Positions 28,476-64,000 of a DNA stretch of 64,000 nt are shown piece by piece. The translations under genes and the position numbers were made by a program. The notes below the pieces were generated by a model. The model was not told the origin of the DNA. It did not search any database and worked only from the letters and a program-made list of their open reading frames with translations. Source of the DNA: Selaginella moellendorffii. Taxonomy: Eukaryota > Plantae > Lycopodiophyta. Each line of letters opens with the position of its first letter. The stretch's first letter is position 1. Where the stretch lies: assembly GCF_000143415.4 (NCBI RefSeq), contig NW_003314281.1:2197710-2261709 (forward strand). Direction: 5' to 3'.

Positions 28476-29483
28476 TGGTGGTTATTTGTTCTCTTTGATG
28501 GCTTCTGGCTTTTTGCATATCACATGTTCTTTGTGATTTGCTCTAGATTGGTCTCTTGGGTTTGAGACATCAAAAGGATGTTGCTAACACTTGCTTAGGC
28601 AACTTGAGTTCCTTGGTGTTGTTGGCTGGGATCTATTTGGATTGGCTAGTGTGATAGTTGGCATGAATGGGTGTTTGTTGGTCTTACCGCATTCATTCTG
28701 TTCTGTTGATTATTGCTCGAGTTAGTTCTGATAGGTTGGGATGTTATTTCCTTCGGGTGATACATTCGCGAGCATTGTGCCTGTCAGTCAATGATACTTT
28801 GTGTTCTTTGAGTTATCTCTAGTAAGTTGTTGGCTTACTGTCTGCTATCTTTGATAGTTATGTTTTATCATTAAGTGTTCTTGATGATACACTAGCTATT
28901 GAATTTTGTTGGATAGTGAATCCTATGTTTTCCAATTATGATGATCTTGGTGGTTCCTGCACTATACTACTAGTTTATCAGATGATAACTTACTTGGAAT
29001 ACTTTTGTGTTCTAATCTAAGATATAATCACTGATAATTCAGCTTCTAAGATATCATTGTCTCTGACTTTGATATTGTCCATTTATTGATCTTTGAGTTT
29101 GGGCCAGTAAAGGCAGACTGGCTTCGGCACTTCGTGTGCATGTTGAAATCTCTAGTCATGGGGTAGCTACTGTCGACTGGTCACATAACCCGCCTCTCTG
29201 TCGATGTTCCTTATTCCGTTGAAAGGGCGTGACCGTGTAAACAACTCTAACTGCCTGTTTACAGTAGTCTATCTAAACCTTACCGACGGGTTTGGTTTCT
29301 TTGCTCAGGAGGGTTGGGGCCTCTGGCTTCTCTCTCTATGTCTCTGCGGGCAGGGCATATCACACTTTTGTAAGTTGGGTGACTCCCAGAGCAGCAAGGG
29401 TGGCTGACCCCGTTGGTCATTTCCTTGTCGGTGACGGCCGGAAGGTGTCTGAGCTAGTAGGTATCCGCGTTAGACAAAGAGGT

Positions 29484-34409: not shown

Positions 34410-34706
34410 AGGGCTGGGTAGTTTTTGAGCTGAGCTCAAGTCAATGAAAGTCAATGAAAGTCAATATAATCCACCAAATACAAAAGTTGATGTTTAAATG
34501 ATTGGTTCGGGATGAACCAACAATTCTATTGAAACCTTAAGACATGTTTTCAGTCCAAGAAAATGCTAAATAATATAAGTCTAATAAATAAATAAATATC
34601 ATAAGTCAAAGAAGAAGCTCAATATTACCACTAAAAAATTTGACTAAAAAAAAAACTATACTTAGTCTTCCTCAGCATCCACATCCACAAAAGGAGGAGT
34701 TCATAT

Positions 34707-39812: not shown

Positions 39813-40890
39813 ATTCTAGCGTGAAATAGCTATGAGGCACAAGTTACTTGCGAGCTAGGAGCAAAAGATAGGGAGATGGAAAAGCAGCAGAGAGAGGCAT
39901 ATCTTGATTGAGGAGTGTCTTTCTAGTGTCTTGAAGTTTTAATGATAGTTTTAATGTTACTATAATCTATTATAATGTCTGATGCATGTTTGCACATAGA
40001 TCCAAAGAAGGATTTTCAACACGTGAAGTTTGATAATTAATAATGATATCAGTAATGACATTTGAGTATAATGTGGCAATCCAAGAGGTCTGAACTAACT
40101 AATAGCACATGTGATGTGTCAAGTTTGTTAAATCTTAAGTGCTAGGTGATGATAAATTTTATCAAATCTTAAGTGCTAAGTAATGATAATTCTTCAATGA
40201 AAGATTCAATTCTTACTATGACTTGAGTTTTATCCATAATTGTGAATACTACTCAATGATATTTAATGCATTTAGGATCTAATACAAAAAAAAATAAATT
40301 TCTGGATGAAAATTCATTCATTCATGTATTAGTATAGTACAATATATTTCAATATGCCTTATTTATAATCTTTAAAGTTCTTGTAATGATTTCAAAATAT
40401 GTACAAAATATTGATGAAAATGCATCCTTTCTAGATAATTTGGAAAAAATAATATCATATCTCTAATAACAGAAATGTTGATAGGTGCTAGTTATATCAT
40501 CATTAAAATATACAAAATAAAGAACCATAATTCACATATAATAATAATTATAAGATAAAATAAGATCAAAGATATTATGATAGCTGAGATTTAGGTTATT
40601 TGGAATGAACAGCCAGGATGAGAAATTGGTTAGGGTTAGGGCAGCCATCAGCCTTGAGGCCCAGGTTTTTTTAAGGCTCCCTCCCAGAGCGTGAGAGAGA
40701 TCCAGAGATAGCGAGAGAGTGTGAGAGATGGAGCATGTGAGATTGCGAGAGATCGGGCACGTAAGAGTGCAAAAGATTGAGCATGCTAGAGTGTGAGAGA
40801 TTGAGAGATTGAGATCTCCAGTGCTGGTATCTTCCAAAACTTGAGAGACAGCCTCGTCCTCCTGGTGCCAAGGCCAAGGGCGCGCCGAGG

Positions 40891-41880
40891 ATGTTCCGGG
40901 TAAGCTTTTGTTCTCTCTTTTCCTTTGAAGTTTGTTTGTTTACTCGTTTCTTCTTTTCAGCTCTCCATCGCGCCCCGCCCTGGCAATCCAGCCATGGAGC
41001 TCTCTTCCATCCTTGAGCAATCTAGCAGCCGCGAATTTCTTGGGGAGCGATGCTGCGAGCTTGCGATCGGCCTCACTGGATGTGATCTCGATGCGTTTGA
41101 GCACCGGGATCATGAAAAGAGGGCCATACATCCAAGGGCCTTGTACTTCATATTCTCAAGAACTTCCGAAGAAAAAGGCTACTTTGGTTTCAATTGAGGA
41201 GACAGTGATGACAGGGGCTTCAAAAGAACCAGCTCAACAATACGCTGACCAGATGCTGCACTACGAGCTGGAAAATGACGTCGGAAAAGATGCTGTAGAA
41301 GTTAGAACCGAGTCTGCTTGTAAGGAATAGTACAGTGGCGATGACAGGAGTACTCCTCAAGTGCTGAATAGTCAAGTGGACGATTGGACCAAAACAACTA
41401 CAATCGTCGGTGAGAAGGAAGTTAACTCTTGAAACATTTAATCCAGGTGACCAGAACATTCGGGAGCCTGTTTCCTAAAGAAGAAAGAAGTCACGAAGGT
41501 TTGCCGCTTTAACATGCTTGCTTTCTTTCTCACTCGCATTACCGGAGGAACTTTTAGACGACTATAAACAAGGTTAAAATTGACTGGAGTGCTCTATGGA
41601 GTACGAAGTCAAGGCAAGTTCTGTTTGTAAGCCAGCATTTCTTCTATTTGGTCTTCTAAATTCTTCTATGCTTGCTGATTGCAGATAGTTGAAATGAAAA
41701 TGATGATGCTAAACATGAAATCTCAGTATCGGCAGCAGATGACAACTACCGGAAAAGGCCATATCAATCAATGTGAAACTTCTACAGCTGCCAATGATGA
41801 AAGAGCTTTCCTTGGTTACAAGCAACCAAGCGAAACAAAACGTTGATTTTCTGAAGAAGCAGGATAAAGAAAACTTGAGT
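40891..41880 (+). pseudogene. Unidentified spliced gene remnant
   Basis: ATG TTC CGG|GTAAGC donor, pyrimidine tract and CAG at 40960; overlapping broken ORFs 40925..41197 and 40932..41330; further GT-AG candidates. No recognisable domain. Confidence 0.35.
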
Positions 41881-41999
41881 AGGGAGCTCTTTTCTATAAT
41901 ATCTTTTTCTTATATTATATTGTTTAAAATAAAATTTTGGATATGTGAATATCGAGAGGGGAAGTTGCAATAAAAAATTGACTCCATCCTTCAATTGAA

Positions 42000-42760
42000 A
42001 TAAACTTGTCCATACAAGTTTATCCACGGAAGTTTGTTTTTAAACTAAGTTGTGAATGAACAAGAGTGCCCCTTTATCTTGAAAATATCTACCATGGGCC
42101 TTGCCTTTAGTATAAATCTTGTCTCCCGAATGGACATGTTTGGGTCCAGTGACCTTGCAAATGCATGGGTACATTTTGACCATATGGAGTACGTATTAGG
42201 TTGGACAACTATGGGAGCTCATGTGTATGATCTAAAGTAATTTTTATTCTCATTATATTGAAATTGTTGTAATATTTGTGTTTTCATATGCTATATTGTA
42301 ACTTGACAATTGTGACAGTAGAGTTTAAAGTACAAGACCAAACAACCCAAGAAATATTTTGGAAGTCCCTTTCGGATATTGTCCTAAAGCAGACTGATAA
42401 GCTTACAAACTTTCGCAGTTTCATGATAGATGGGGCTAGTGTAAATTGGAATGGTGTTCGAGCAATTTTTGGGAATGGTCAATTATTGGAAGGTTATGAG
42501 AGTTCCATTGGGCTCAAATCCTAAACTAACACTGCCACTTTATCTAGCCAAAGTTTCAATTAATGTTTAAGGAGTTGTGTAAACAGTGATAGGTTGCACC
42601 TTCTAAAGAAGAGCATAAGGTAAAAGCAAATAAGATTTGAATGTGATGGCGTAAAAATGGCCATACGGATATAAGTTGTTTATTACAACTTGAGTCATGG
42701 TTAGGGTGGTGGGAAGTTAAGATGTTCCAGTAAGGACATCACTCTTTTTAAGTTGGTTTC
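42000..42760 (+). pseudogene. MULE-like DDE transposase core fragment
   Basis: DLANAWVHFDHMEYVLGWTTMGAHVYD and FRSFMIDGASVNWNGVRAIFG fit the MULE core pattern; the inverted paralog reads HERTCEFY where CxxH is expected. Stops present. Confidence 0.65.
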
Positions 42761-43580
42761 TATTTTTTCTTCTCATTTTATTGCCTTTTAATATTGCCTT
42801 TTCCATTAGTGGAGTACACTCTCTGAGCTTCTATTGGTGATATGAAGATTATTCGCTTAAAGTGTTGTTTTCCTTTTGCTGGTGAAGATGTTGGTAATAA
42901 GAATACTTTTTCTGCAAACATCTTATTTTTTGTTTTAACAAATATCCCTATTATGGCATGTAATAAATATTTAAATTGTTAGAACAAGAAGTGCTCTTTA
43001 GAACATTTTTATCTATATAATATGTATGGAGGTATGAAATTATTAAATTCATAACCTTATTTAAAGTTTTTAATGTTTGTATTAAACTACAATTGAAATT
43101 TGAGCTCAACTTATGAGCTCAACTCTTCAACTTGTGAGTTCAAATATAGTCCACACTCTATAAAATCTATGACATGGATATAAACATGGTTGGAACTTAG
43201 TGTGTTTTATGATTTAGATAAGTTTAAGGTGCAAATGGTGCAAAGCTATTTTGAGTACACTTTTGGAATATTTACAAAGTCTAATAAATGGTCAGCTCTT
43301 GTTTTGGGTTTAATTTTGTGTTTATCATCAACTTTTAGAATGCTATTATGGTGATCCCATCCAGTATTGTGGAGGATTCAAGGACTAAAATGAAATCGAG
43401 GAAGTTATGTCTAAAGCTTAGACATGCTAATGTTTTTATCACTATCATCTCCAACTGAGGTTGCTGATTATCAACTCACTTGGCAAGAATAGCAAAATCA
43501 ACACATTTTAACACTTTGATTTATAAGAACTACTGCCCTTAAAGAATATACTCAGACAGCGGCGGCTAGGGCTTAAGCCC

Positions 43581-46500
43581 ATGGAGGTGGATGCGAGCAC
43601 TGTGGAGGAGTTTGTAGAGTTCATCGAAGACATAGATGGGGCAGAGGGCTGCGAATTTTACCTTGATGATGGTAGAGTGGCGGTACATGATGTTCTCCAG
43701 GAGTTCTCGGCTGTCTTTATCAGTGTGAAGCGCTATGAGCAAGGCAGGGTCAGGTGGAGACGTCTACAGGCAGGGGAAGACGGCCTGAGCAGGTCTACAT
43801 ATGTGCCTGGATCTTCTCATACTATTCGGGCAACGAAGGCTCCTACACGTAAGTAGCGTTGCCTGGATCTGCCGGCCTGGTGTGGTTTTCGCAACTTTGT
43901 GGTCTTTGGATCTGTGTTCTTTCTGGGCTGTGCGTTATTTAGGAGTGCTTCTCGTTTCGCCCTTTTTTTGCCTCGTCGCGCCTCTTGCCCCCTGGCTATG
44001 CCGAGTACTGACAAGTTTATATTTCTGTTTCAGCGACCCTGCCGATAACCCTTCAAGCTGCGCCAGGTAAGCAATTGCTGAGCAAAACCACTTCTTGGCT
44101 GGAACTTGGCGTTTACTTGTCGTGGTGCTAGTGCCTGGTCTCTGTGTGTTTGTGAAGCCCTTCGGCTGTTGCCTTTGTTGGTGCGGTGTGTTTTTTTTGC
44201 TGTGTAGCTTGTAGAACGTGTTGCCTGGATTTTTCTGCATCTGCGGCTCTTCGTACGTACGGGGTTATGCTTTGGTGTTTAATGTGTTGGTGTACTGTGG
44301 CTATTTCTACTACTGACACATTTGTGTTGTTGTAGTGTCGAGGTTGCTGGATGTATACACAAAACAACTGGAGGATGCAAGGTTTCTTCGCGGGATGCCG
44401 GCGAGGAGGGTGCCAGGCTGCAAATTGCCTCTTGTGGACAACGGTGCGCAGCCGTATTTACATGCGGACTTGGGAGATTATTTTACTTTGGTCGGAAGGG
44501 ACGAGACGATTCAGCATCTTATGGCAGCCGCTGCACGGGTCTTTGCAACTTTTATGAACACGACGGCCAGTGCCTCGGATATTGAACGAAAAGAGTTCAT
44601 GTTGATGGTCATCGGATTTCCTGGCGCAGGTAAAACAACTGTCGGGTCATGCCTTTCAGCTCTCCTCAGAGAAGCGTGGTTGAGGGGCACAGAAACAGGG
44701 GCTATAGATGCCATTCTCGAGGACCAGCTTGGTTCTGGTAGGCTTGTCACTCAGTTCAAGGAAATGGTGAATAATGTGTTGGAGACCGGGAAACACCTTC
44801 GAATGTATCATTCCCTTGAGACGACAAGGACTGGGGGTGCACTTCTGCTTGAGAACGGCCTGGAAGGCGCACAGGTTTTGGCCCTTCGGTCCTTGCATGC
44901 AGCACTTTGTCCAATGAATACGACTGCATATGGTGATTTTCTCAAGGAGTTGGATGGCATATTTCCGGGCCTGAGGAATGTGCTGGCTTTCGGAGATGTG
45001 GTCGACTTCATTCGAACTGGTCTTAAGGTTCCTGCCGACAAGCGAATTTTCCTATCTTGGTTTTTTGATGAAGTCAATAAGGCTCGACCTCAGCGAGGTC
45101 GCCCAGCTGCATCGTCCTGGATTCATGAAGCTTTCTCGGCCTACGTTCAACATATCAAAGGTAACCGAGGTGGCTTGACGTTTCCTGTACTTACAGCAGC
45201 AACGACCCGATTTTCTGGGGCCACAATGCGTTACACGTCTACGGAGAATGCTACGAGTATTTTTATCCCTATCAGGCCTTTGAAAGAGGAGGAAGTGGAA
45301 CATATAACGAAAATTTTCTTTTCAAGACTAGGAGATACTCTCGACATGGAGAAACCATTTGAGTTGAAGGACGGACTAAGGAAGCTGATAAAGTTAGCAG
45401 GAGGTAATCCTAGGATGCTTGATCACCTGTTGAGAGGGTTGATGCCCGAGCACCCTCATCTCGAAGCTTTGAAGTTCTACGAGAAGGTTTGTTCGGCTCT
45501 TTTTTGTCTTTTTTCTTGATGTGATGAGAAGTTTTTTTATGTTTGTTACAGGTGGATCAAGATCTCACCCAAGCCGATCTGTGCAAAACAATAACGAATG
45601 CGTGGAAACGTATTAAGGGCAGTTATTATCTTCACTACCTTCATGACAGCAACTATTTGTTAGTGCTACGAGCCCTTTATGTTGCGCTGCTGGGGACCCT
45701 TATCAATCGGGACGACCTAGTATGGCCAGGCATTTACAGTGATAAGTGGGGATTTTTAGAGTCTTGCGGTTTAGTTGGACTCTTACGCAACGAGGTACTT
45801 TTCTGGTATTTCAGAAGTTTATGTGAGTGCTTATGTGGGGTTAATTTACAGGAGGAGCCGCCTCCCCATAAGCAGGTAAAATTATCGAAACAGGAAGACA
45901 CAAAGAATGGAATGCGCGCTTTTTCCATCATGTTCTCTCCACTCCTTATATACCATCTTGTCGAGAACCTACATGTGGCGGAGCTGCGACATTTATGGCC
46001 TCCTATACTGGATTCTAATCCCAAGGTTAAGGAGGTATCAGACCTCATGTGCATTGTCTTCATGATATACATGGGTAAGCTTTTTCATGATCGCGAGAAG
46101 GACACGGTGTTCGAGTTCACACTCAAAGACATTCTCCCCTCAAATTTCCGCGTTCCTGCACGTATGCAAGCTTTGAAGTTCCGGTTGCCAGCTGGTGCAA
46201 GGTTTGGACCTCCGAAACGTCAGCCTCATCAGATTCATGAAGCAGAGGCATTTCAAGCCTTTTTAAATGACAACAAGAAGCAATTCTATTGGGTTGGTAT
46301 TGGCAACCATGGACCTGATAGCTTCATCCATCTAAAGCTAGTGGTTGTGGAGGATACGTTGGATGATTTTTTTATATTTCTTGAGAGTAAGCACAGGGAA
46401 TGTTATGAAGGCCAACAAGCAAGATGGGAACAAGATTTTCTGAAGAAAACATGGAGGATAGAGCAATGGATAGAAGGTATTTAATTTTATTTGTGGGTGG

Positions 46501-47031
46501 TTAAATGTGTGTCTTTTCAGATGGGGAGTACGCTGTCATTTTTATGACAGACCAAGCATTGCATAACGTGATTCGGAAAGTAAAAAAGCAGGATAAGATG
46601 GTTGTTCCGAAGGTGGATACATGCTATTACGGGTATCCGCAGCAGAGTCCATTTGGTACGTTTTTTTATGCTTTTCTTTTTGTTAGAATTGGTTTTTATG
46701 TTTTTATGTTGTATGTGTAGGTTTATTTAGTGCCGTGAGGCACACATCAATGCTAGCAGCTGCAAGTTGGAGTTGGAGAGGAAAACAAACGAGAGAACCT
46801 TTTGATCCAACCTACGAACCTAGTGGTAATCCACGGGGTGCTGAGCGAAGAACACCACCAAGAACACGCTCTAAAACCCGAGGACAGGTTGGAAGAACAC
46901 GCTCTAAAACCCCAGGACAGGTTGGAAGAACACGCTCTAAAACCCGAGGACAGGTTGGAAGAACACGCTCTAAAACCCAAGGACAGGTTGGAAGAACACG
47001 CTCTAAAGGTGCCACGAAGCGAAAAAGGTAA
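43581..47031 (+). CDS. Crinkler/RHS(CR)-type NTPase + PD-(D/E)xK nuclease protein, 921 aa, 7 exons: 43581-43848, 44034-44066, 44336-45486, 45552-45794, 45852-46476, 46521-46655, 46721-47031
   Basis: All six introns are GT-AG and phase-compatible (2766 nt, no internal stop). Motifs: LVGRDE, Walker A GFPGAGKT (44614-44637), Walker B WFFDE, GGNPR, GPDSF...FLESK, then IFMTD and YYG. Confidence 0.85.
46861..47007 (+). repeat. 33-bp coding tandem repeat (~4.5 copies, RTRSKTxGQVG)
   Basis: AGAACACGCTCTAAA recurs at 46861, 46894, 46927, 46960, 46993. Confidence 0.95.
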
Positions 47032-47149
47032 CCAGGAGGTTTGACAAGCACCATCAATGGTTTGCACAAAGTATTAATGTGTGCAATTGTCCTGTATAGA
47101 AAGAGATATGTATCTTAACCTTAATGGGCGTGAATATCTTTTACCAATA

Positions 47150-50100
47150 CTCACTATATCATTTTTAAGTGTTGTGCTGAATGTGTGGTGAGTGCTCACA
47201 CACCACAAAAAAGTTTTTGTGGTGCATGAGCATTCGAGCCCATGCTCTTTTGGAATATTGTAGTTGATACTATATTCACATGCATTGTGATGAGAGATGG
47301 GTCTGAAATTAGACAATACATGGGGTATGATAGTGAGTGTAAATCCCAGCTCCCTCATGCCCACATCAACAGTATAATCAAAGCATTTTGCCACTTTATG
47401 AAAGAGAATTTTCTGTTAGCTACACACATCAGAATTTTTGTAGCCATTGCCAATGCTTAGTGGTAGCAGGGCCTTGGTTTAATGTATTTTTAATAGCTCT
47501 TAGAACAACATGTATAACTTATAGCAGAGAGAAATCAGTCTACTCCAATTTCAATATTGGATCATTTGTGCTACCTAGGGAGGGGGAATAGTCAAACTCA
47601 CCTTGATTCCACCACATACGAGGTGAGCTCCTCCAATAATGTAGAAGCACGAAGTCAGTGAGAGTATTAGAGTTTTAGACAAAGATCTAAAGACCCAATG
47701 AGCTCTTTAATCTGATGCAAATGCAAATCTCACCCACAAGTCTCTTCACACTAGAATTTTAAGAAATCCTGTTCATTGGAAACTTTTTCCAACCAAGAAA
47801 AGGTGGCACCTTGTTCTTAACCCGCAAAATACATTTGGGTTTGTAGCTGTCTTCCACCTGCTTCAATCTAACAACGTCTCTACCAACACTGAGGCCAGGA
47901 GGTGATGTGCTATGCCAATTCCATTGCATTGCACTACAACCAAGTGAGAATCTCGCTAGCTGTGAGAGAAACAAACAATGATTACTTCACAAAATTCCTT
48001 GGGGATGTCCTATTGCTAGTAGCCAACCATGAAGTAAAACAAAGCCTTCCAAAACACTCTAAAGCTTATTAAAACTGAATGCAATTTTACTGGCACTCAT
48101 AATCTTCTCATTAATCACTAATATCATTTTTAAAACACTTTTGAAGACTTTTAAATGCTTCAGAAAAGGGGTGAAGCCCAACCCAACCCTTCCTTATTAT
48201 TGCCCTCCTTTTTATAGTTGGCTCTCCCAATGATTTCTTCTAGTTCTCTATTGATTGTAGACTTCAAGGAATATCCATGCATCTCCACATCACATCCTAA
48301 ATGTAATGTCGATCAAAACATGATTTCCATTGTTTCCAGGGTTTGGACAGCATAGCTATGCCACATGCCACCACCTAGGATGCAATCCTACTTCTTTAGG
48401 TTTTGCCCAAGCTCATACTTCTCAGCTAATGCTCCCACATTCATTGTTAACAAGTGAATCTTATCCTTGTTTGATCTCTAGGGCCAATCCCAACTGTCCT
48501 TAACAACATCTAAACTTTTGAGGTAGACCCAATAGCACCTTCTTAAAGCTTCTCCACCATCTCTCCCTTAGCTAAAATAGAAAATTCCTATATCTACTGC
48601 TTTGTGGGAATCTCTAAACCTATCCTAGATTCCTTTTGTTTCAGCATCCCTTTGCCACTTGCTCAATAGGTGATTCCATTCTACACTTGCTCCTTGGTTG
48701 TCTTCTCAAGCTCAAGCAATGCCTCTGCATCCTCTGAGATGTCCTCATCCTTGTCTTTTAGCTTGCTAATGGTGTCCTCTGAGTCATCACCTAGGTCCAG
48801 CTCCTCCCTAGTGAACTCCTCAAATTTCTACTTAGACTCCTCTTCTCCTATCGCTTCCTTCCATAAGATCTTAATTTCCTAGTTCAAAGTCTTTTCTTGC
48901 AACTTTTTCCTTGAGGATCTAGTTGACACGATTGCCTCAATCAGCTTCCCTATTGTCCAAAGCTGCCACACCATAAGCTCCTATAATATAGAGCTCTCCT
49001 CCACAATTTAATTGTTTTTTTGAATCTTTATTAGTGTGTTTTCATATTGGGTGTTGAACTCCATAATTTGTTATTCAAATTCTAACTTTTGTTGTCCCTG
49101 TGCCTTTACTAAATGTTGTATGATATAGTAAGCAATTTCAACCTGTTGTGATGCACTCTTTTTATCAGCCATTTTAGGTGGCTTTATCTGAGGGCAGTGT
49201 ATTAGAGTAGAATGATACTCAACATCAGGCATATGAGAGCTTTTTACTCTAATGTCTATGCCAACATCTTCACTAACAAAGGAAAAACAATGCTTTGAGT
49301 GGACTATCTTCATATCATTAATAGAAGCTCGAGAAGTGTACTCCATAGATATGCCGTGGAGCACTTCCTCAATTGCAGTTACCATTATTTAGGCGGGTGG
49401 AGTCAATTTTCTCTTCATCCTATCATGTAACATCTCAATAGAAAGCCTTGTTCCCATGTAACCACTTGAGGACCTCGCATACACCCCAATTGTGAATCTC
49501 TCCAAAAGTAAGCACTAGAGTTGGCATTTCTCTGAAGCAGGGAAAGGGAAGATGAGTCTATATGAAGTCTATTAAATTTAATATGCACTATAAAGCAATC
49601 TTCAAAAGTGTTCCAATTTGAGGAGATATTAAAAAGCAATAAAATGACAAGAAAAATAGAAACCAACTTAAAAAGAGTGATGTCCCCATTGGAACATCCT
49701 AACTTTTACCACCTTAACTATGACTCAAGTTGAGGTAAGCAACTTGTGTCTGCATAGCCACCTTCACGCCATCATATTTAAATTTTATTTACCTTTGCCT
49801 TGTGCTTTTCTTTAAAGGATGCAGGTTGCCATTATTTGCACAACTCCTTAAACACTGATTGAAACTTTGGCTTGATAAGATGGTAGTGTTAGTTTAGGCT
49901 CTGAACCTAATAGAACTCACAAGTCCTCTCATGACCTTCCAATGGTTAACTAGTTCTAAAAATTGCTTGGACACCATTCTAGTTTGCACTAGCCCTATCT
50001 ACCATGAAATAACAAAATTTTATAGGCTTCCAGTCCGCTTTAGCATAATATCAAAAAGGGACTTCCAAAATATTTCCTGGGTTGTTTGGTTTTTTACTTT

Positions 50101-51830
50101 AAACTTTATTGTTGCAATTGTCAAGTTACAATATAGCCTATGAAAAAACAAATATTACAACCATTTCAATATAATGAGAATAAAAATTACCTTGGATACA
50201 TGTGAGCTCCCATAGTTGTCCAACCTAATACACGCTCCATATGGTCAAAATGTACCCCTACATTGTAGAGATTCACACATCCAATTTTTTATCCTAAACA
50301 ATATAATGTAAAAAAAATATATTTTTGTAATGTACAAATATACCTTCTTAGACTAGTAGCAAGTTGTACTCCTCATAGTAAATTCTGTAGGCTAACCTTA
50401 TTTAGTTGAGTCTTTGGTAGCCTAGATTAAGTAGGGTGTTTGCAATAAAACCCTTAAAGACGATCTTTTAAACATGCTTTAGAGTTGCAGATAAGTTTCT
50501 CATAGTTTCTTTCTGCACAACATCTTTGAAACAGTTGAAAGAACTTTTTTGTATCCTTTCTTGTATTGGATGCATATATATGTCAACATATACTACAACT
50601 CTTCTAGCCATTCCATCCCATGGAAGAATGTTAGGACCCTATCCCTTACATCTTAAGCCAACTAGCTAAAAGGGTGATCACTTGATTGTAGGGCCCTTTC
50701 TTTATCCTATTATTCTGATCTATCCTCCCCTTGTCAAAGAATGATCATCTACAATCATATTTAGGCCATCCTCTAGTCACCATGGTCCTTCTTTTAGGGT
50801 TTACCAAACCTTGGTTCTCCCTCTAGATCCACTATGTTAAATATTCCTTTTGAATATTCTTGCCCTACTCATCAGCCACAAGAATAGAACTGGGCTCCCA
50901 TACCAATGTTAGGATCCTATCCCTTACATCCTAAGCCAATTTGCTAAAGGGGGGATCACTTGATTGCAGGGCCCTTTCTTTATCTTATTCTCTTTACCTT
51001 GTACCTAACAAAAAAAGTACATCCTAGCCTTGCTGATAGCACAACATAGAGGAGCATATTTGCAAAATTGACATTTGAATCTAACAGTAATGGTATCACA
51101 GGTAGGATGATTGATTGTAAACCCTTGAAAAATATAGAACTTTTTCCGCGATCTTGATTGCATACTTCATCCATGCAATCTAAATGCTCACCACAATAAA
51201 CTACAGACACCATACCTTCAAAATGTTGGAAGTGTGTGGTATTAATCTTGCATCAATTATGGACATTTTGCTTGGTTTCCATTCCCTTCTGTTTAAAACT
51301 TATGTTGTTAACAAGAAGTGGTAGCTCAAAAAAAATATTGCCGTTGTAAGAGGATGGAAGTTTGCTCATGAATCTATACAAAAACAAGCACTTGTCAACT
51401 GAGACATGCGAAAACTGGAAAGCATTGTTAATGGCTTTGAATATTGTTGAAGATGGAGCTAGTGAATTTGACATTGATACTAGCATGGCTTCTCCACTTA
51501 AACTAAAAGAAGAGGAGAGGATGACGACTGACTCTTGCTTTACATTCACTTTTGCTAGAGTGCATCTTGGCACTTTGATTTGAGATCCAAAAACTCGAAT
51601 CTCTTTCGATTTAGAATTTTACAAATTTTATTACTGTTTACCCTCACCCACACCGGAAAGAAGAAACCTTGAGCATGCAACTATACCGGTGTCATTGTGA
51701 ATCACAACCTCTAACAAAATAGAGCCAAGACGAAAATCAAAACGCCAACATAAAAAACTTTTGAAAACAATACTTTGAGAAAATAAAAGAGGTGGGTGAT
51801 CTCGAAAATGTAAAAAAAACCTCTCCATCC
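47150..51830 (-). pseudogene. MULE-like transposase pseudogene (Cys/His N-terminal region, DDE core ~49700-50260, possible SWIM remnant ~47185-47260)
   Basis: 49640-50258 is an inverted paralog of 42166-42790. LECSC...CEH near the 3' end; VVYCGEH near the 5' end. Many stops and a TRIM insertion. Confidence 0.6.
50629..51010 (-). mobile_element. TRIM (terminal-repeat retrotransposon in miniature), 382 bp
   Basis: ~100-bp direct repeats at 50629-~50720 and 50907-51010 (TGTTAGG...CCTAACA). PBS-like TGGTATGGGAGCCC (50892-50905) and PPT AAGGGGAGGA on the minus strand. Flanks AAGAA/AAAAA. Confidence 0.8.
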
Positions 51831-52931
51831 TTCATAATAGTTTTTGGAGTTCTCTCTCTCTTTATACTATTTGTAAAAATCTATAGTGAAATATAAATTG
51901 AAATTCAAGGAGAGCAATATGAAGAATGTTAATAGCATACAAAATGAATTTAAATTCTATAACAAATTTAATATATGCAAGTGTGATAGTTTTAATGTTA
52001 CTATAATCTATTATAATGTCTGATGCATGTTTGCACATAGATCCAAAGAAGGATTTTCAACACGTGAAGTTTGATAATTAATAATGATATCAGTAATGAC
52101 ATTTGAGTATAATGTGGCAATCCAAGAGGTCTGAACTAACTAATAGCACATGTGATGTGTCAAGTTTGTTAAATCTTAAGTGCTAGGTGATGATAAATTT
52201 TATCAAATCTTAAGTGCTAAGTAATGATAATTCTTCAATGATAGATTCAATTCTTACTATGACTTGAGTTTTATCCATAATTGTGAATACTACTCAATGA
52301 TATTTAATGCATTTAGGATCTAATACAAAAAAAAATAAATTTCTGGATGAAAATTCATTCATTCATGTATTAATATAGTACAATATATTTCAATATGCCT
52401 TATTTATAATCTTTAAAGTTCTTGTAATGATTTCAAAATATGTACAAAATATTGATGAAAATGCGTCCTTTCTAGATAATTTGGAAAAAATAATATCATA
52501 TCTCTAATAACAGAAATGTTGATAGGTGCTAGTTATATCATCATTAAAATATACAAAATAAAGAACCATAATTCACATATAATAATAATTATAAGATAAA
52601 ATAAGATCAAAGATATTATGATAGCTGAGATTTAGGTTATTTGGAATGAACAGCCAGGATGAGAAATTGGTTAGGGTTAGGGCAGCCATCAGCCTTGAGG
52701 CCCAGGTTTTTTTAAGGCTCCCTCCCAGAGCGTGAGAGAGATCCAGAGATAGCGAGAGAGTGTGAGAGATGGAGCATGTGAGATTGCGAGAGATCGGGCA
52801 CTTAAGAGTGCAAAAGATTGAGCATGCTAGAGTGTGAGAGATTGAGAGATTGAGATCTCCAGTGCTGGTATCTTCCAAAACTTGAGAGACAGCCTCGTCC
52901 TCCTGGTGCCAAGGCCAAGGGCGCGCCGAGG

Positions 52932-53935
52932 ATGTTCCGGGTAAGCTTTTGTTCTCTCTTTTCCTTTGAAGTTTGTTTGTTTACTCGTTTCTTCTTTTCA
53001 GCTCTCCATCGCGCCCCGCCCTGGCAATCCAGCCATGGAGCTCTCTTCCATCCTTGAGCAATCTAGCAGCCGCGAATTTCTTGGGGAGCGATGCTGCGAG
53101 CTTGCGATCGGCCTCACTGGATGTGATCTCGATGCGTTTGAGCACCGGGATCATGAAAAGAGGGCCATACATCCAAGGGCCTTGTACTTCATATTCTCAA
53201 GAACTTCCGAAGAAAAAGGCTACTTTGGTTTCAATTGAGGAGACAGTGATGACAGGGGCTTCAAAAGAACCAGCTCAACAATACGCTGACCAGATGCTGC
53301 ACTACGAGCTGGAAAATGACGTTGGAAAAGATGCTGTAGAAGTTAGAACCAAGTCTGCTTGTAAGGAATAGTACAGTGGCGATGACAGGAGTACTCCTCA
53401 AGTGCTGAATAGTCAAGTGGACGATTGGACCAAAACAACTACAATCGTCGGTGAGAAGGAAGTTAACTCTTGAAACATTTAATCCAGGTGACCAGAACAT
53501 TCGGGAGCCTGTTTCCTAAAGAAGAAAGAAGTCACGAAGGTTTGCCGCTTTAACATGCTTGCTTTCTTTCTCACTCGCATTACCGGAGGAACTTTTAGAC
53601 GACTATAAACAAGGTTAAAATTGACTGGAGTGCTCTATGGAGTACGAAGTCAAGGCAAGTTCTGTTTGTAAGCCAGCATTTCTTCTATTTGGTCTTCTAA
53701 ATTCTTCTATGCTTGCTGATTGCAGATAGTTGAAATGAAAATGATGATGCTAAACATGAAATCTCAGTATCGGCAGCAGATGACAACTACCGGAAAAGGC
53801 CATATCAATCAATGTGAAACTTCTACAGCTGCCAATGATGAAAGAGCTTTCCTTGGTTACAAGCAACCAAGCGAAACAAAACGTTGATTTTCTGAAGAAG
53901 CAAATGCAAAAGCTAGGATAAAGAAAACTTGAGTA
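52932..53935 (+). pseudogene. Unidentified spliced gene remnant, duplicate
   Basis: Copy of 40891-41880. Confidence 0.35.
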
Positions 53936-54053
53936 GGGAGCTCTTTTCTATAATATCTTTTTCTTATATTATATTGTTTAAAATAAAATTTTGGATATGT
54001 GAATATCGAGAGGGGAAGTTGCAATAAAAAATTGACTCCATCCTTCAATTGAA

Positions 54054-54814
54054 ATAAACTTGTCCATACAAGTTTATCCACGGAAGTTTGTTTTTAAACT
54101 AAGTTGTGAATGAACAAGAGTGCCCCTTTATCTTGAAAATATCTACCATGGGCCTTGCCTTTAGTATAAATCTTGTCTCCCGAATGGACATGTTTGGGTC
54201 CAGTGACCTTGCAAATGCATGGGTACATTTTGACCATATGGAGTACGTATTAGGTTGGACAACTATGGGAGCTCATGTGTATGATCTAAAGTAATTTTTA
54301 TTCTCATTATATTGAAATTGTTGTAATATTTGTGTTTTCATATGCTATATTGTAACTTGACAATTGTGACAGTAGAGTTTAAAGTACAAGACCAAACAAC
54401 CCAAGAAATATTTTGGAAGTCCCTTTCGGATATTGTCCTAAAGCAAACCGATAAGCTTACAAACTTTCGCAGTTTCATGATAGATGGGGCTAATGTAAAT
54501 TGGAATGGTGTTCGAGCAATTTTTGGGAATGGTCAATTATTGGAAGATTATGAGAGTTCCATTGGGCTCAAATCCTAAACTAACACTGCCACTTTATCTA
54601 GCCAAAGTTTCAATTAATGTTTAAGGAGTTGTGTAAACAGTGATAGGTTGCACTTTCTAAAGAAGAGCATAAGGTAAAAGCAAATAAGATTTGAATGTGA
54701 TGGCGTAAAAATGGCCATACGGATATAAGTTGTTTATTACAACTTGAGTCATGGTTAGGGTGGTGGGAAGTTAAGATGTTCCAGTAAGGACATCACTCTT
54801 TTTAAGTTGGTTTC
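54054..54814 (+). pseudogene. MULE-like transposase core fragment, duplicate
   Basis: Copy of 42000-42760. Confidence 0.65.
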
Positions 54815-55634
54815 TATTTTTTCTTCTCATTTTATTGCCTTTTAATATTGCCTTTTCCATTAGTGGAGTACACTCTCTGAGCTTCTATTGGTGATATGAA
54901 GATTATTCGCTTAAAGTGTTGTTTTCCTTTTGCTGGTGAAGATGTTGGTAATAAGAATACTTTTTCTGCAAACATCTTATTTTTTGTTTTAACAAATATC
55001 CCTATTATGGCATGTAATAAATATTTAAATTGTTAGAACAAGAAGTGCTCTTTAGAACATTTTTATCTATATAATATGTATGGAGGTATGAAATTATTAA
55101 ATTCATAACCTTATTTAAAGTTTTTAATGTTTGTATTAAACTACAATTGAAATTTGAGCTCAACTTATGAGCTCAACTCTTCAACTTGTGAGTTCAAATA
55201 TAGTCCACACTCTATAAAATCTATAACATGGATATAAACATGGTTGGAACTTAGTGTGTTTTATGATATAGATAAGTTTAAGGTGCAAATGGTGCAAAGC
55301 TATTTTGAGTACACTTTTGGAATATTTACAAAGTCTAATAAATGGTCAGCTCTTGTTTTGGGTTTAATTTTGTGTTTATCATCAACTTTTAGAATGCTAT
55401 TATGGTGATCCCATCCAGTATTGTGGAGGATTCAAGGACTAAAATGAAATCGAGGAAGTTATGTCTAAAGCTTAGACATGCTAATGTTTTTATCACTATC
55501 ATCTCCAACTGAGGTTGCTGATTATCAACTCACTTGGCAAGAATAGCAAAATCAACACATTTTAACACTTTGATTTATAAGAACTACTGCCCTTAAAGAA
55601 TATACTCAGACAGCGGCGGCTAGGGCTTAAGCCC

Positions 55635-58600
55635 ATGGAGGTGGATGCGAGCACTGTGGAGGAGTTTGTAGAGTTCATCGAAGACATAGATGGGGCAGAG
55701 GGCTGCGAATTTTACCTTGATGATGGTAGAGTGGCGGTACATGATGTTCTCCAGGAGTTCTCGGCTGTCTTTATCAGTGTGAAGCGCTATGAGCAAGGCA
55801 GGGTCAGGTGGAGACGTCTACAGGCAGGGGAAGACGGCCTGAGCAGGTCTACATATGTGCCTGGATCTTCTCATACTATTCGGGCAACGAAGGCTCCTAC
55901 ACGTAAGTAGCGTTGCCTGGATCTGCCGGCCTGGTGTGGTTTTCGCAACTTTGTGGTCTTTGGATCTGTGTTCTTTCTGGGCTGTGCGTTATTTAGGAGT
56001 GCTTCTCGTTTCGCCCTTTTTTTGCCTCGTCGCGCCTCTTGCCCCCTGGCTATGCCGAGTACTGACAAGTTTATATTTCTGTTTCAGCGACCCTGCCGAT
56101 AACCCTTCAAGCTGCGCCAGGTAAGCAATTGCTGAGCAAAACCACTTCTTGGCTGGAACTTGGCGTTTACTTGTCGTGGTGCTAGTGCCTGGTCTCTGTG
56201 TGTTTGTGAAGCCCTTCGGCTGTTGCCTTTGTTGGTGCGGTGTGTTTTTTTTGCTGTGCAGCTTGTAGAACGTGTTGCCTGGATTTTTCTGCATCTGCGG
56301 CTCTTCGTACGTACGGGGTTATGCTTTGGTGTTTAATGTGTTGGTGTACTGTGGCTATTTCTACTACTGACACATTTGTGTTGTTGTAGTGTCGAGGTTG
56401 CTGGATGTATACACAAAACAACTGGAGGATGCAAGGTTTCTTCGCGGGATGCCGGCGAGGAGGGTGCCAGGCTGCAAATTGCCTCTTGTGGACAACGGTG
56501 CGCAGCCGTATTTACATGCGGACTTGGGAGATTATTTTACTTTGGTCGGAAGGGACGAGACGATTCAGCATCTTATGGCAGCCGCTGCACGGGTCTTTGC
56601 AACTTTTATGAACACGACGGCCAGTGCCTCGGATATTGAACGAAAAGAGTTCATGTTGATGGTCATCGGATTTCCTGGCGCAGGTAAAACAACTGTCGGG
56701 TCATGCCTTTCAGCTCTCCTCAGAGAAGCGTGGTTGAGGGGCACAGAAACAGGGGCTATAGATGCCATTCTCGAGGACCAGCTTGGTTCTGGTAGGCTTG
56801 TCACTCAGTTCAAGGAAATGGTGAATAATGTGTTGGAGACCGGGAAACACCTTCGAATGTATCATTCCCTTGAGACGACAAGGACTGGGGGTGCACTTCT
56901 GCTTGAGAACGGCCTGGAAGGCGCACAGGTTTTGGCCCTTCGGTCCTTGCATGCAGCACTTTGTCCAATGAATACGACTGCATATGGTGATTTTCTCAAG
57001 GAGTTGGATGGCATATTTCCGGGCCTGAGGAATGTGCTGGCTTTCGGAGATGTGGTCGACTTCATTCGAACTGGTCTTAAGGTTCCTGCCGACAAGCGAA
57101 TTTTCCTATCTTGGTTTTTTGATGAAGTCAATAAGGCTCGACCTCAGCGAGGTCGCCCAGCTGCATCGTCCTGGATTCATGAAGCTTTCTCGGCCTACGT
57201 TCAACATATCAAAGGTAACCGAGGTGGCTTGACGTTTCCTGTACTTACAGCAGCAACGACCCGATTTTCTGGGGCCACAATGCGTTACACGTCTACGGAG
57301 AATGCTACGAGTATTTTTATCCCTATCAGGCCTTTGAAAGAGGAGGAAGTGGAACATATAACGAAAATTTTCTTTTCAAGACTAGGAGATACTCTCGACA
57401 TGGAGAAACCATTTGAGTTGAAGGACGGACTAAGGAAGCTGATAAAGTTAGCAGGAGGTAATCCTAGGATGCTTGATCACCTGTTGAGAGGGTTGATGCC
57501 CGAGCACCCTCATCTCGAAGCTTTGAAGTTCTACGAGAAGGTTTGTTCGGCTCTTTTTTGTCTTTTTTCTTGATGTGATGAGAAGTTTTTTTATGTTTGT
57601 TACAGGTGGATCAAGATCTCACCCAAGCCGATCTGTGCAAAACAATAACGAATGCGTGGAAACGTATTAAGGGCAGTTATTATCTTCACTACCTTCATGA
57701 CAGCAACTATTTGTTAGTGCTACGAGCCCTTTATGTTGCGCTGCTGGGGACCCTTATCAATCGGGACGACCTAGTATGGCCAGGCATTTACAGTGATAAG
57801 TGGGGATTTTTAGAGTCTTGCGGTTTAGTTGGACTCTTACGCAACGAGGTACTTTTCTGGTATTTCAGAAGTTTATGTGAGTGCTTATGTGGGGTTAATT
57901 TACAGGAGGAGCCGCCTCCCCATAAGCAGGTAAAATTATCGAAACAGGAAGACACAAAGAATGGAATGCGCGCTTTTTCCATCATGTTCTCTCCACTCCT
58001 TATATACCATCTTGTCGAGAACCTACATGTGGCGGAGCTGCGACATTTATGGCCTCCTATACTGGATTCTAATCCCAAGGTTAAGGAGGTATCAGACCTC
58101 ATGTGCATTGTCTTCATGATATACATGGGTAAGCTTTTTCATGATCGCGAGAAGGACACGGTGTTCGAGTTCACACTCAAAGACATTCTCCCCTCAAATT
58201 TCCGCGTTCCTGCACGTATGCAAGCTTTGAAGTTCCGGTTGCCAGCTGGTGCAAGGTTTGGACCTCCGAAACGTCAGCCTCATCAGATTCATGAAGCAGA
58301 GGCATTTCAAGCCTTTTTAAATGACAACAAGAAGCAATTCTATTGGGTTGGTATTGGCAACCATGGACCTGATAGCTTCATCCATCTAAAGCTAGTGGTT
58401 GTGGAGGATACGTTGGATGATTTTTTTATATTTCTTGAGAGTAAGCACAGGGAATGTTATGAAGGCCAACAAGCAAGATGGGAACAAGATTTTCTGAAGA
58501 AAACATGGAGGATAGAGCAATGGATAGAAGGTATTTAATTTTATTTGTGGGTGGTTAAATGTGTGTCTTTTCAGATGGGGAGTACGCTGTCATTTTTATG

Positions 58601-59085
58601 ACAGACCAAGCATTGCATAACGTGATTCGGAAAGTAAAAAAGCAGGATAAGATGGTTGTTCCGAAGGTGGATACATGCTATTACGGGTATCCGCAGCAGA
58701 GTCCATTTGGTACGTTTTTTTATGCTTTTCTTTTTGTTAGAATTGGTTTTTATGTTTTTATGTTGTATGTGTAGGTTTATTTAGTGCCGTGAGGCACACA
58801 TCAATGCTAGCAGCTGCAAGTTGGAGTTGGAGAGGAAAACAAACGAGAGAACCTTTTGATCCAACCTACGAACCTAGTGGTAATCCACGGGGTGCTGAGC
58901 GAAGAACACCACCAAGAACACGCTCTAAAACCCGAGGACAGGTTGGAAGAACACGCTCTAAAACCCCAGGACAGGTTGGAAGAACACGCTCTAAAACCCG
59001 AGGACAGGTTGGAAGAACACGCTCTAAAACCCAAGGACAGGTTGGAAGAACACGCTCTAAAGGTGCCACGAAGCGAAAAAGGTAA
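55635..59085 (+). CDS. CR-type NTPase + PD-(D/E)xK nuclease protein, copy 2; exons 55635-55902, 56088-56120, 56390-57540, 57606-57848, 57906-58530, 58575-58709, 58775-59085
   Basis: Exon translations are identical to copy 1 at offset +12054; splice sites conserved. Confidence 0.85.
58915..59061 (+). repeat. 33-bp coding tandem repeat, copy 2
   Basis: Same as 46861-47007. Confidence 0.95.
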
Positions 59086-59203
59086 CCAGGAGGTTTGACA
59101 AGCACCATCAATGGTTTGCACAAAGTATTAATGTGTGCAATTGTCCTGTATAGAAAGAGATATGTATCTTAACCTTAATGGGCGTGAATATCTTTTACCA
59201 ATA

Positions 59204-63881: not shown

Positions 63882-64000
63882 TTCATAATAGTTTTTGGAG
63901 TTCTCTCTCTCTTTATACTATTTGTAAAAATCTATAGTGAAATATAAATTGAAATTCAAGGAGAGCAATATGAAGAATGTTAATAGCATACAAAATGAAT

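Follow-up and report, generated by a model that had tools for sequence, protein, structure and literature searches.

A tandemly repeated, expressed Selaginella moellendorffii gene encodes a predicted Crinkler/RHS-type NTPase-nuclease

Results

A spliced and expressed gene of seven exons

The window analysed here, a stretch of 64,000 nt in whose coordinates all positions are given, carries on its forward strand at 43581-47031 a gene of seven exons with a coding sequence of 2766 nt, which translates to 921 amino acids without internal stops. All six introns are GT..AG with compatible phases, and the TAA stop codon occupies 47029-31. The sequence was used unaltered, the gene being intact, and exons were joined only to check frame and identity. 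The features of the gene are:

43581..43848, + strand: exon 1, start codon and acidic header of about 89 aa
44034..44066, + strand: exon 2, a 33-nt micro-exon, 11-codon Pro/Thr-rich linker
44336..45486, + strand: exon 3, AAA+/STAND-like P-loop NTPase (predicted)
44614-44637, + strand: Walker A, GFPGAGKT (exon 3)
45058-45072, + strand: Walker B, WFFDE (exon 3)
45400-45414, + strand: GGNPR (exon 3)
45552..45794, + strand: exon 4, helical/winged-helix-like connector from NTPase to nuclease
45852..46476, + strand: exon 5, PD-(D/E)xK nuclease core (predicted)
46032-46034, + strand: E626, putative nuclease site (exon 5)
46317-46319, + strand: D721, putative nuclease site (exon 5)
46383-46385, + strand: E743, putative nuclease site (exon 5)
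46389-46391, + strand: K745, putative nuclease site (exon 5)
46521..46655, + strand: exon 6, fourth core strand of the nuclease (h-h-h-h-x-T-D motif) and the subsequent helix
46721..47031, + strand: exon 7, disordered basic tail with 33-nt repeats, KRKR and stop

The six splice joints (43848/44034, 44066/44336, 45486/45552, 45794/45852, 46476/46521 and 46655/46721) were exact in RNA contigs from four runs of four studies, and the two joints of the micro-exon (the first two of this series) were seen in 4 of 4 runs. These contigs start near 43551, there is no depth beyond about 43551-47100, and their alleles match copy 3 of the array described below, as opposed to the two copies in the window. 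Expression was steady and fairly high in every RNA run examined. The gene is real, spliced and expressed, with the RNA alleles being those of array copy 3.

The translation is identical to P0033, which is RefSeq XP_024533345.1/XP_024533347.1 ("uncharacterized protein", S. moellendorffii); the gene is therefore already annotated, though unnamed, and had not gone unnoticed. Exactly the 11 residues of the micro-exon are missing from RefSeq isoform X3 (P0031). We rejected the 943-aa isoform X1 as the true product, since its gene model spans two array units. The seven-exon model, its RNA joints and the RefSeq identity agree with the original prediction, made from the sequence alone, that five open reading frames and a micro-exon join into one 921-aa frame; the open frame and six GT..AG introns bear out its description of the gene as intact, and the spliced transcript that it had proposed as a check is present with all six joints in contigs from the four studies. 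Every motif that it named is also there: GRDE at residue 154, GFPGAGKT at 194, WFFDE at 342, GGNPR at 456, GPDSF at 719, FLESK at 741 and the terminal KRKR.

A predicted NTPase, a connector and a predicted nuclease

Across 14 homologues, PGxGK(T/S), DE and GGNPR show little or no variation. The NTPase was modelled with a pLDDT of about 85, and residues 100-500 of the predicted structure group with the ORC/Cdc6, TnsC and NB-ARC ATPases. In Foldseek searches the matches to the NTPase had probabilities of 0.95-1.0 and E values of 4e-5 to 1e-3: ORC1/Cdc6, TnsC and the NB-ARC of NRC reached a probability of 1.0 and NOD2 0.96-0.99, and RuvB, CED-4 and Apaf-1 were found as well. The Pfam families AAA_16, ATPase_2 and nSTAND3 matched the same region, all under their cut-offs. 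With its Walker A and Walker B motifs, a lid carrying a conserved arginine and an ORC/NB-ARC-like fold, the domain is predicted to be a P-loop NTPase of the AAA+/STAND type.

The connector is helical and winged-helix-like by prediction. It co-aligns in predicted structures with the equivalent part of Crinkler proteins, and residues 1-108 of the C-terminal model gave a weak match to the winged-helix repressor BigR (Z 4.3).

The putative nuclease site reads E626...D721...E743-x-K745, and the pattern conserved in plants and algae is (K/R)E-x-x-D ... G-N-x-G-x-D ... (E/Q)-S-K. The predicted core has the topology alpha-beta-beta-beta-alpha-beta, in which exon 5 supplies a helix (118-143 in model numbering) followed by strands at 207-209, 218-227 and 230-241, and exon 6 supplies a strand (272-279) and a helix (284-290); the "FMTD"-type strand of exon 6 is kept in homologues. 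E626, D721, E743 and K745 fall in the expected elements, namely the E of the helix, the D at the start of strand 2 and the (D/E)xK of strand 3. When the model was compared with solved structures by VIA, the best matches were nearly all PD-(D/E)xK nucleases at Z 4.5-7.0, a range that the tool warns can reflect a common arrangement; the partners at Z 5-7 were Nt.BspD6I, PaqCI, Card1, MspJI, FokI and the Avs4 nuclease. The C-terminal domain thus has, by prediction, a PD-(D/E)xK (restriction endonuclease-like) fold and is a predicted nuclease. This fold was the point on which the original prediction had staked its claim beforehand, and both the predicted core and the near-exclusive restriction-fold matches uphold it.

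An acidic header and a basic, repetitive tail

The header has a net charge of -7 and an N-terminus that is not hydrophobic (mean Kyte-Doolittle -0.13 over the first 30 residues). No signal peptide was found in it, judging from the hydrophobicity of the N-terminus, and the LxLFLAK, DWL and HVLVxxP translocation motifs are absent from the 921-aa translation. On these sequence features the protein does not belong among secreted effectors in the sense of the oomycete CRNs. The header shares 60% identity with the N-terminal part of paralogue P0002; in its place, paralogues P0001 and P0004 have coiled-coil-like N-termini. Against Pfam it had no match at E<=1, the Crinkler family PF20147 included, and residues 1-97 were modelled with a pLDDT below 50. 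The header may be ubiquitin-like, as hinted weakly by a language-model (Atlas) feature search in which all matches, with weak scores of at most 0.80, were to beta-grasp/Ubl-like domains (TDP-43_N, GT-1 Ubl, CIDE-N and PB1).

The tail, also modelled with a pLDDT below 50, contains a 33-nt (11-aa) repeat present in 4.5 copies at 46860-47007 with 97% matches (TRF). It has a net charge of +23 over 96 residues and ends in KRKR.

A tandem array of 12-kb units

The gene lies within a repeated unit, with these features in and around the window:

39943..51983, no strand assigned: tandem unit 1, about 12.05 kb
51984..64000, no strand assigned: tandem unit 2, which extends past the window, with units 3 and 4 further along the scaffold
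42160..42794, no strand assigned: left arm (~640 bp) of an inverted repeat that brackets the gene; right arm at 49626-50264
55635..59085, + strand: gene copy 2, complete, with a protein identical to that of copy 1

In self-BLAST, 39943-51949 and 51984-64000 were 99.4% identical. Gene copy 2, at an offset of +12054, differs from copy 1 by one mismatch in 3801 nt; because this sole difference is intronic (44205), the two proteins are identical. A tblastn search with P0028 found the same five blocks in copy 2. Beyond the window, the same scaffold holds a third intact copy and then a fourth that is cut by an assembly gap, so that the array comprises at least four units of 12 kb. "Duplicated", as the gene had been called, was thus an understatement. 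Among the three full copies the only differences are two synonymous changes, at 45315 and 45674, and one in an intron, at 44205; the units as a whole have diverged in their flanks but are nearly identical in the coding stretch.

Of the other open reading frames of at least 150 aa in the window, only two have a Pfam family, one a fragment of a retrotransposon gag and one of a reverse transcriptase, so the description of the surroundings as a transposon graveyard is broadly right. In the 35 kb examined, RefSeq annotates nothing except the genes of the array. The arms of the inverted repeat are 82% identical in inverted orientation.

These surroundings raise the possibility that the gene is cargo or a remnant of a mobile element, a transposition module of a TnsC-like ATPase and a TnsA-like nuclease that does not serve the plant. 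The gene sits amid retrotransposon relics, a 640-bp inverted repeat pair brackets it and the array has at least four units. In the Foldseek search with the full model, TnsC of Tn6677 ranked third and eleventh; the NTPase model matches VchTnsC with a probability of 1.0 (E 8e-5), and the Tn7 family likewise pairs an AAA+ ATPase (TnsC) with a restriction-fold nuclease (TnsA). By the account in PMC5289972, Zhang et al. 2016 derive CR modules from transposons in both title and thesis, and amplification of a fish Crinkler-like gene together with flanking transposons has been reported (PMC12957317). However, the unit has no transposase or integrase, the ORFs flanking the gene in the unit having matched no transposase or other family, and no target-site duplication was seen beside the inverted repeats. 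The copies are strictly tandem, which is the behaviour of unequal crossing-over and not of dispersal, and paralogues P0001 and P0027 sit amid ordinary genes (PPR, rhodanese and O-FucT). Six spliceosomal introns and purifying selection also speak against an element, and, unlike in Tn7, the two activities would be fused in one polypeptide with no TnsB-like transposase nearby. We consider this origin distinctly unlikely.

Membership of the Crinkler/RHS class

A CR (Crinkler/RHS) module is defined by a P-loop NTPase, an HTH or winged helix and a restriction-endonuclease-fold domain (PMC5289972). According to what PMC5289972 and PMC12957317 relay from Zhang et al. 2016, the most common class among CR C-termini is the NTPase+HTH+REase type.

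Searched against AlphaFold DB clusters with Foldseek, the full-length model aligned along residues ~100-830 with "Crinkler (CRN) family protein" and related entries at E 2e-17 to 1e-7, and the C-terminal model matched Crinklers, a trypanosome retrotransposon-hot-spot C-terminal domain and Bodo multi-copy proteins at E 1e-9 to 5e-4 (TM 0.5-0.59), the predicted structures behind these comparisons having mean pLDDT values of 65 and 72. In a shape search of the ESM Atlas the top match was a Crinkler cluster from Mucoromycota (TM 0.66); PDDEXK_4, NucS_C and Mrr_cat clusters came next.

Searches by sequence alone reached nothing beyond the P-loop. Exon by exon, Pfam gave a sub-threshold P-loop only and nothing for header, nuclease or tail; a profile of the 14 homologues found only P-loops among PDB sequences; word-index searches with P0001 and with the A1 profile returned Selaginella paralogues only and did not reach named Crinklers; and no PADLOC model matched the 921-aa protein. 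PADLOC matches of P0004 were dismissed as coiled-coil noise, and when the exon 4/5 ORF was used unspliced, with its 19-aa retained intron, in an Atlas feature search, the glucan-synthase neighbours returned (recognition 1318) made no sense. The case for CR membership is therefore built on predicted structures and motifs.

Because of the predicted fold, the nuclease matches and the Crinkler/RHS structural neighbours, the assignment of the NTPase, winged-helix and REase module to the CR type is supported. Domain by domain, the structure prediction that had been called for gave an ORC/TnsC/NB-ARC-like NTPase and a restriction-fold, Crinkler/RHS-like C-terminus. Of the header + NTPase + nuclease architecture originally claimed, the NTPase + winged-helix + REase part stands on predicted structures, and the header, with no Pfam match, a pLDDT below 50 and weak Ubl-like hints, is at best a candidate CR header. 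The statement that land plants have CR homologues, also made in the original prediction, is given by both PMC5289972 and PMC12957317 in their citations of Zhang et al. 2016. The gene is a further member of this class already reported in land plants.

In oomycete CRNs, Rhizophagus RiCRNs and chytrid CRNs the same three-part C-terminal module occurs in the same order, and the predicted structures of CR proteins annotated as Crinkler superpose on that of the Selaginella protein over ~700 residues (E to 2e-17). Both sides have intact P-loop and PD-(D/E)xK motifs, a separate, exchangeable N-terminal header and lineage-specific multi-copy expansion. Unlike the pathogen effectors, the Selaginella protein is encoded by a free-living plant, has no signal peptide, LxLFLAK/HVLVxxP motif or PF20147 match, and carries a basic tail of 11-aa repeats; its sequence similarity to fungal and oomycete members is under HMMER detection. 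Matches to trypanosomatid RHS and Bodo multi-copy proteins, which share the C-terminal fold (A0A061IUC1, E 5e-4; Bodo, E 1e-4 to 2e-11), are weaker than those to Crinklers. These families and the Selaginella gene are all multi-copy in repeat-rich DNA; nothing points to the gene as a retroelement insertion site.

Relatives and selection

A phmmer search of 1.84 billion representatives returned only 20 matches, and the 14 with a named source all came from Selaginella, Adiantum, Klebsormidium, Chlorokybus, Myrmecia or Coccomyxa; the remaining six were transcripts or contigs. By sequence search, the subfamily was found only in Viridiplantae (a lycophyte, a fern, and charophyte and chlorophyte algae), with no relatives found in seed plants or bryophytes; this may reflect loss in the latter two groups.

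The nearest structural and language-model neighbours are mostly Mucoromycota Crinkler clusters, as would be expected if the gene were a contaminant of fungal or oomycete origin, or had recently been acquired by horizontal transfer from a microbe rich in Crinklers, for instance a mycorrhizal fungus. Against this, the S. moellendorffii reference scaffold GL377585.1 matches the window at 100% identity, scaffold GL377682.1 carries a near-identical gene, the relatives of named source are all plants or green algae with no fungal or oomycete protein at E 1e-3 among the 1.84 billion representatives, and the vascular-plant members cluster in the tree, apart from the algal ones. Both versions of a microbial source are thus very improbable. 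The odd termini of the 1100-aa P0030 were rejected as a sign of header or tail swapping, as they coincide with N-gaps in GL377682.1.

Compared with paralogues, dN/dS was 0.41-0.48 for the NTPase, 0.51-0.54 for the connector and 0.22-0.24 for the nuclease, whose exon is the most constrained part of the gene. These values bear on whether the protein cuts DNA at all. A freely active DNase is not expected to tolerate constitutive expression, and an alternative is therefore a chromatin- or DNA-binding factor with no catalytic activity, a domesticated CR module free of toxin activity in which the nuclease fold grips DNA and the NTPase remodels or loads. Steady, fairly high expression in all RNA runs fits such a factor, since a nuclease would need tight control; moreover, most homologues have Q for E in (E/Q)SK, and one clade has TQTR. 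The Selaginella protein and its nearest paralogues nevertheless keep the canonical E...D...ExK, and the strongest constraint falls on the nuclease exon. A silent binder is therefore unlikely in our judgment.

Discussion

A nucleotide-switched nuclease in genetic conflict?

On balance we lean towards an intact, transcribed, plant-encoded CR protein that acts in the nucleus as an NTP-switched nuclease in genetic conflict. The N-terminus is not hydrophobic and the tail has a net charge of +23; the basic tail may carry the protein to the nucleus. The NTPase would serve as a nucleotide-dependent switch or oligomeriser that holds the nuclease off during constitutive expression until some trigger leads it to free the nuclease or load it on DNA. 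Such a nuclear, ATP-gated DNase could act in defence, cell death or selfish spread, as had originally been proposed; its part in genetic conflict might be defence against invaders or self-propagation of the array, and would not be a housekeeping one.

Avs3/Avs4, Lamassu LmuA, Card1/Can2 and McrBC follow a common logic, with an NTPase or ligand switch joined to a PD-(D/E)xK effector. The Selaginella nuclease domain matches the Avs4, LmuA, Card1, Can2 and McrC nucleases at Z 4.5-6.5, and its NTPase aligns with NB-ARC/NOD modules. Unlike the prokaryotic proteins, it has another domain order, no recognisable sensor repeat domain and no PADLOC match. The likeness appears to be a resemblance in working principle and fold rather than demonstrated kinship.

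A broader and rather doubtful possibility is that non-seed green plants keep Crinkler-type ATPase-nucleases as an intracellular sensor-executor, an NLR-like switch with a nuclear DNase, encoded in tandem arrays homogenised by gene conversion and used for programmed cell death or for immunity against viruses or transposons. If true, plants would have in it a eukaryotic equivalent of the Avs-type defence of bacteria, and an immune module that lies outside the NLR/RLK canon.

Research on Crinkler proteins treats them as weapons injected into plants by pathogens. In this case it is a plant itself that carries, expresses and amplifies the ATPase-nuclease module known from pathogen Crinklers. The overall picture is unchanged, as reports of the class in land plants go back to 2016 (Zhang et al., as cited in PMC5289972 and PMC12957317). 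What the locus adds is a resolved gene model, named predicted catalytic residues, copy-number and selection data and a distribution across the green lineage; the role of CR proteins in non-pathogens is now directly testable in Selaginella or by heterologous expression.

Gene structure and tandem amplification

The gene is intact, spliced, expressed (from contigs bearing the letters of array copy 3), constrained and amplified in a tandem array. Five ORFs and a micro-exon had been joined in the original prediction into one 921-aa frame, and the sequence together with the ORF list bears this out, giving seven exons on the forward strand:

43581-43848, +, exon 1
44034-44066, +, exon 2
44336-45486, +, exon 3
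45552-45794, +, exon 4
45852-46476, +, exon 5
46521-46655, +, exon 6
46721-47031, +, exon 7

All six introns are GT..AG (185, 269, 65, 57, 44 and 65 nt), the phases agree, and the joined CDS of 2766 nt encodes 921 aa with no internal stop. Every motif that had been named is found in this translation in the stated order. The last exon contains a 33-nt repeat (4.5 copies, 97%).

The gene had also been described as duplicated, and the array extends further than that. A 12-kb unit at 39943-51949 is repeated at 51984-64000 with 99.4% identity. Gene copy 2, at 55635-59085, has a single intronic base changed relative to copy 1. On the same scaffold, an intact copy 3 follows 11,970 bp beyond copy 2, and copy 4 is interrupted by an assembly gap; every complete copy encodes the same 921 aa. 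In a three-unit alignment (window 39943-64000 plus positions 18367-32437 of L001, the locus that continues past the window end), we counted 0-2 substitutions per kb in the 5 kb around the gene and mostly 2-24 per kb, with indels, in the flanks. This low divergence points to homogenisation by conversion or to a mutation rate below that of the surrounding transposon-derived DNA, the changes being too few to separate the two. The other ORFs of the 12-kb unit have no family matches. In each unit the gene is bracketed by a pair of inverted repeats of ~640 bp, 82% identical:

42160-42794, upstream repeat
49626-50264, downstream repeat, inverted relative to the first

No target-site duplication is visible beside this pair, and the repeats could be either the ends of one element or two separate insertions.

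The spliced translation is identical letter for letter to RefSeq XP_024533345.1/XP_024533347.1, named [quoted passage not shown]. Because L001 1-18366 equals window 45635-64000 at 100% identity, the window is S. moellendorffii scaffold GL377585.1. Isoform X1 of LOC112347174 (943 aa) has two additional 11-aa tail repeats; its gene model covers 15.4 kb (L001 10001-25421), beginning where one array unit starts and finishing where the following unit ends, and probably joins two units instead of representing the product of a single gene. Isoform X3 skips the micro-exon. A further RefSeq model of 1100 aa (LOC9635800), on scaffold GL377682.1, has a core identical to the 921-aa protein and two divergent ends. 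The gene copy on that scaffold is broken by two 100-N gaps (positions 12488-12587 and 15586-15685 of locus L004), and the divergent ends fall at these gaps.

Transcription

The presence of a spliced transcript had been set beforehand as a check on the prediction, and such a transcript was found. When RNA contigs of four runs from four studies were placed on window 43200-47400, each run showed exactly the six predicted joints, with zero depth outside ~43551-47100. Across 14 RNA-type runs, the share of sampled words present from the 3451-nt gene stretch was ~0.66-0.76, near the exonic fraction of 0.80. All four runs also held an unspliced intron-2 contig (window 44037-44363) at ~1-40% of the spliced-joint depth.

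Array copy 3 differs from both window copies at 45315 and 45674, synonymously in both cases. In all four runs the contigs carry C at 45315 and T at 45674, the letters of copy 3 and not those of the window copies; RNA contigs drop minor variants, and these letters are thus silent on transcription of the window copies either way. A second set of variants (45144/45149/45175/45197) reaches about a quarter to 40% of the depth; three of the four runs have it, and it agrees with none of the three array copies.

Predicted ATPase and nuclease domains

Pfam returned only sub-threshold P-loop families for exon 3 and no match for the other exons. An AlphaFold2 model built from the RefSeq protein and 14 homologues (mean pLDDT 65) reached ~85 over residues 100-500 and 55-86 over residues 500-745, with the header (1-97) and tail (826-end) below 50. 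Compared with the PDB, its confident part matched ORC1/Cdc6, the transposon ATPase TnsC and RuvB as well as the NB-ARC/NOD modules of NRC, NOD2, NLRC4, CED-4 and Apaf-1 (probability 0.95-1.0, E 4e-5 to 1e-3). From these matches, the predicted fold of residues 100-500 is that of an ORC/STAND-like AAA+ switch ATPase. Among homologues, three motifs show little or no variation: Walker A PGxGK(T/S), Walker B DE and GGNPR.

As far as prediction tells, the C-terminal region has the PD-(D/E)xK fold that had been proposed for it. A separate model of residues 505-830 (pLDDT 72, pTM 0.79) begins with a small helical/winged-helix part, after which a long helix leads into three strands, then a helix and one more strand, the order of a PD-(D/E)xK core. 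No PDB match by Foldseek was significant (best E 0.02), but the list consists mostly of FokI, Can2, MspJI, Mus81, BamHI, EndoMS and arenavirus cap-snatching nucleases. VIA re-alignment gave Z 5-7 for Nt.BspD6I, R.BspD6I, AF1548, PaqCI, Card1, Cdn1, MspJI, the Avs4 nuclease, FokI, LmuA and Can2, and nearly all entries with Z of at least 4.5 are PD-(D/E)xK-fold nucleases. Because a VIA Z below 8 may reflect a common arrangement, the weight of the assignment lies in the uniformity of this list and in the conserved site motifs:

E626, in helix motif (K/R)E-x-x-D
D721, in G-N-x-G-x-D at the start of strand 2
E743 and K745, in (E/Q)-S-K at the end of strand 3
(T/S)-D, at the end of strand 4

Conservation of all four motifs extends beyond Selaginella to Klebsormidium, Chlorokybus and unnamed algal transcripts. 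The protein combines an AAA+/STAND-like ATPase with a restriction-fold domain, each complete in its catalytic motifs, in an overall architecture of the Crinkler/RHS (CR) type.

Relationship to Crinkler/RHS proteins

A search of AlphaFold DB fold clusters with the C-terminal model gave 30 best matches with E 1e-9 to 5e-4. These include several Crinkler (CRN) family proteins or Crinkler effector N-terminal domain annotations, a trypanosome retrotransposon-hot-spot C-terminal domain and a Bodo multi-copy protein; the remainder are mostly unnamed, and in every match the aligned part falls within its C-terminal half. The full-length model matched the same kinds of protein over residues ~100-830 (E as low as 2e-17). 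In a shape search of the ESM Atlas, the top match was a cluster named "Crinkler family protein" from Mucoromycota (TM 0.66), and bacterial clusters of PDDEXK_4, NucS_C and Mrr_cat came next. A language-model search with the NTPase exon found unnamed Mucoromycota and Basidiomycota clusters, the best of which has a Crinkler cluster among its structural neighbours.

Most Phytophthora CRN C-termini have the architecture NTPase + HTH + REase (PMC5289972). PMC5289972 and PMC12957317 state that Zhang et al. 2016 found homologues of CR proteins in eukaryotes that are free-living, chlorophyte algae and land plants among them. By its modelled C-terminal module, the gene belongs to the CR class. Tests for the signal peptide and the translocation motifs of secreted oomycete CRN effectors found neither in the 921-aa protein, which therefore does not count as a secreted CRN effector as the term is used for oomycetes.

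The exon 1 header has 60% identity to the N-terminus of the Selaginella paralogue P0002; the closest paralogues by NTPase, P0001 and also P0004, have coiled-coil-like N-termini in its place. Headers therefore vary among close relatives, as expected for CR proteins. Language-model feature scores for the header were 0.80 or less, all to beta-grasp families, which gives only a hint that it may be ubiquitin-like. The 96-residue tail carries a net charge of +23 and its last residues are KRKR; with the lack of a signal peptide, this suggests an intracellular and probably nuclear protein.

Distribution and selection

With the NTPase exon as query against 1.84 billion cluster representatives, phmmer matched only 20 proteins. 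Six are unnamed transcripts or contigs; the others are Selaginella paralogues and proteins of a single fern (Adiantum), Klebsormidium, Chlorokybus, Myrmecia and Coccomyxa. Seed plants, bryophytes, fungi and oomycetes contributed none of the 20. In a maximum-likelihood tree of the NTPase region, Selaginella and Adiantum cluster together (support 80/92), separately from the algal groups. This pattern fits a long presence in the green lineage, with expansion in Selaginella; an ancient transfer is possible too, the tree having no outgroup. Some relatives pair the NTPase with different partners: Selaginella P0009 (D8SC97) has the UniRef name serine/threonine kinase, and of the Klebsormidium proteins P0006/P0013 one has a ubiquitin domain upstream and a second one an RRM.

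Against P0001 and P0027, the nuclease has a dN/dS of 0.22-0.24, compared with 0.41-0.48 in the NTPase and 0.51-0.54 in the connector (exon 4). For the same pairs, dS is 0.28-0.33 in the NTPase exon (44338-45486) versus 0.66-0.72 in the nuclease exon (45852-46475), a contrast that suggests a mosaic history through recombination or conversion between paralogues. The genes around P0001 and P0027 are ordinary.

Proposed mechanism and surroundings

The class was already documented in land plants and the gene was present in RefSeq; the present analysis adds a verified gene model with its catalytic residues, the structure of the array and the homogenised stretch around the gene, figures on selection, and a distribution across the green lineage. 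We hold the identity of gene and protein with high confidence. In the mechanism that we propose, the basic tail would deliver the protein to the nucleus, and the ATPase would gate or load the nuclease, because steady expression must be reconciled with a DNase; the role may be one in conflict, either defence or selfish maintenance. Taken as a whole, we consider this mechanism somewhat favoured.

The stretch 47330-49737, downstream of the gene, has an older partial copy at window 34705-36805 (91-96% identical), which no gene copy adjoins. Retrotransposon relics were found at window 13427-13978 and 31190-32110, one ORF with a gag domain (E 1.5e-9) and another with reverse transcriptase and the beginning of RNase H (E 2e-19), and large direct repeats (1-4300 / 24850-29130) point to LTR-type elements.
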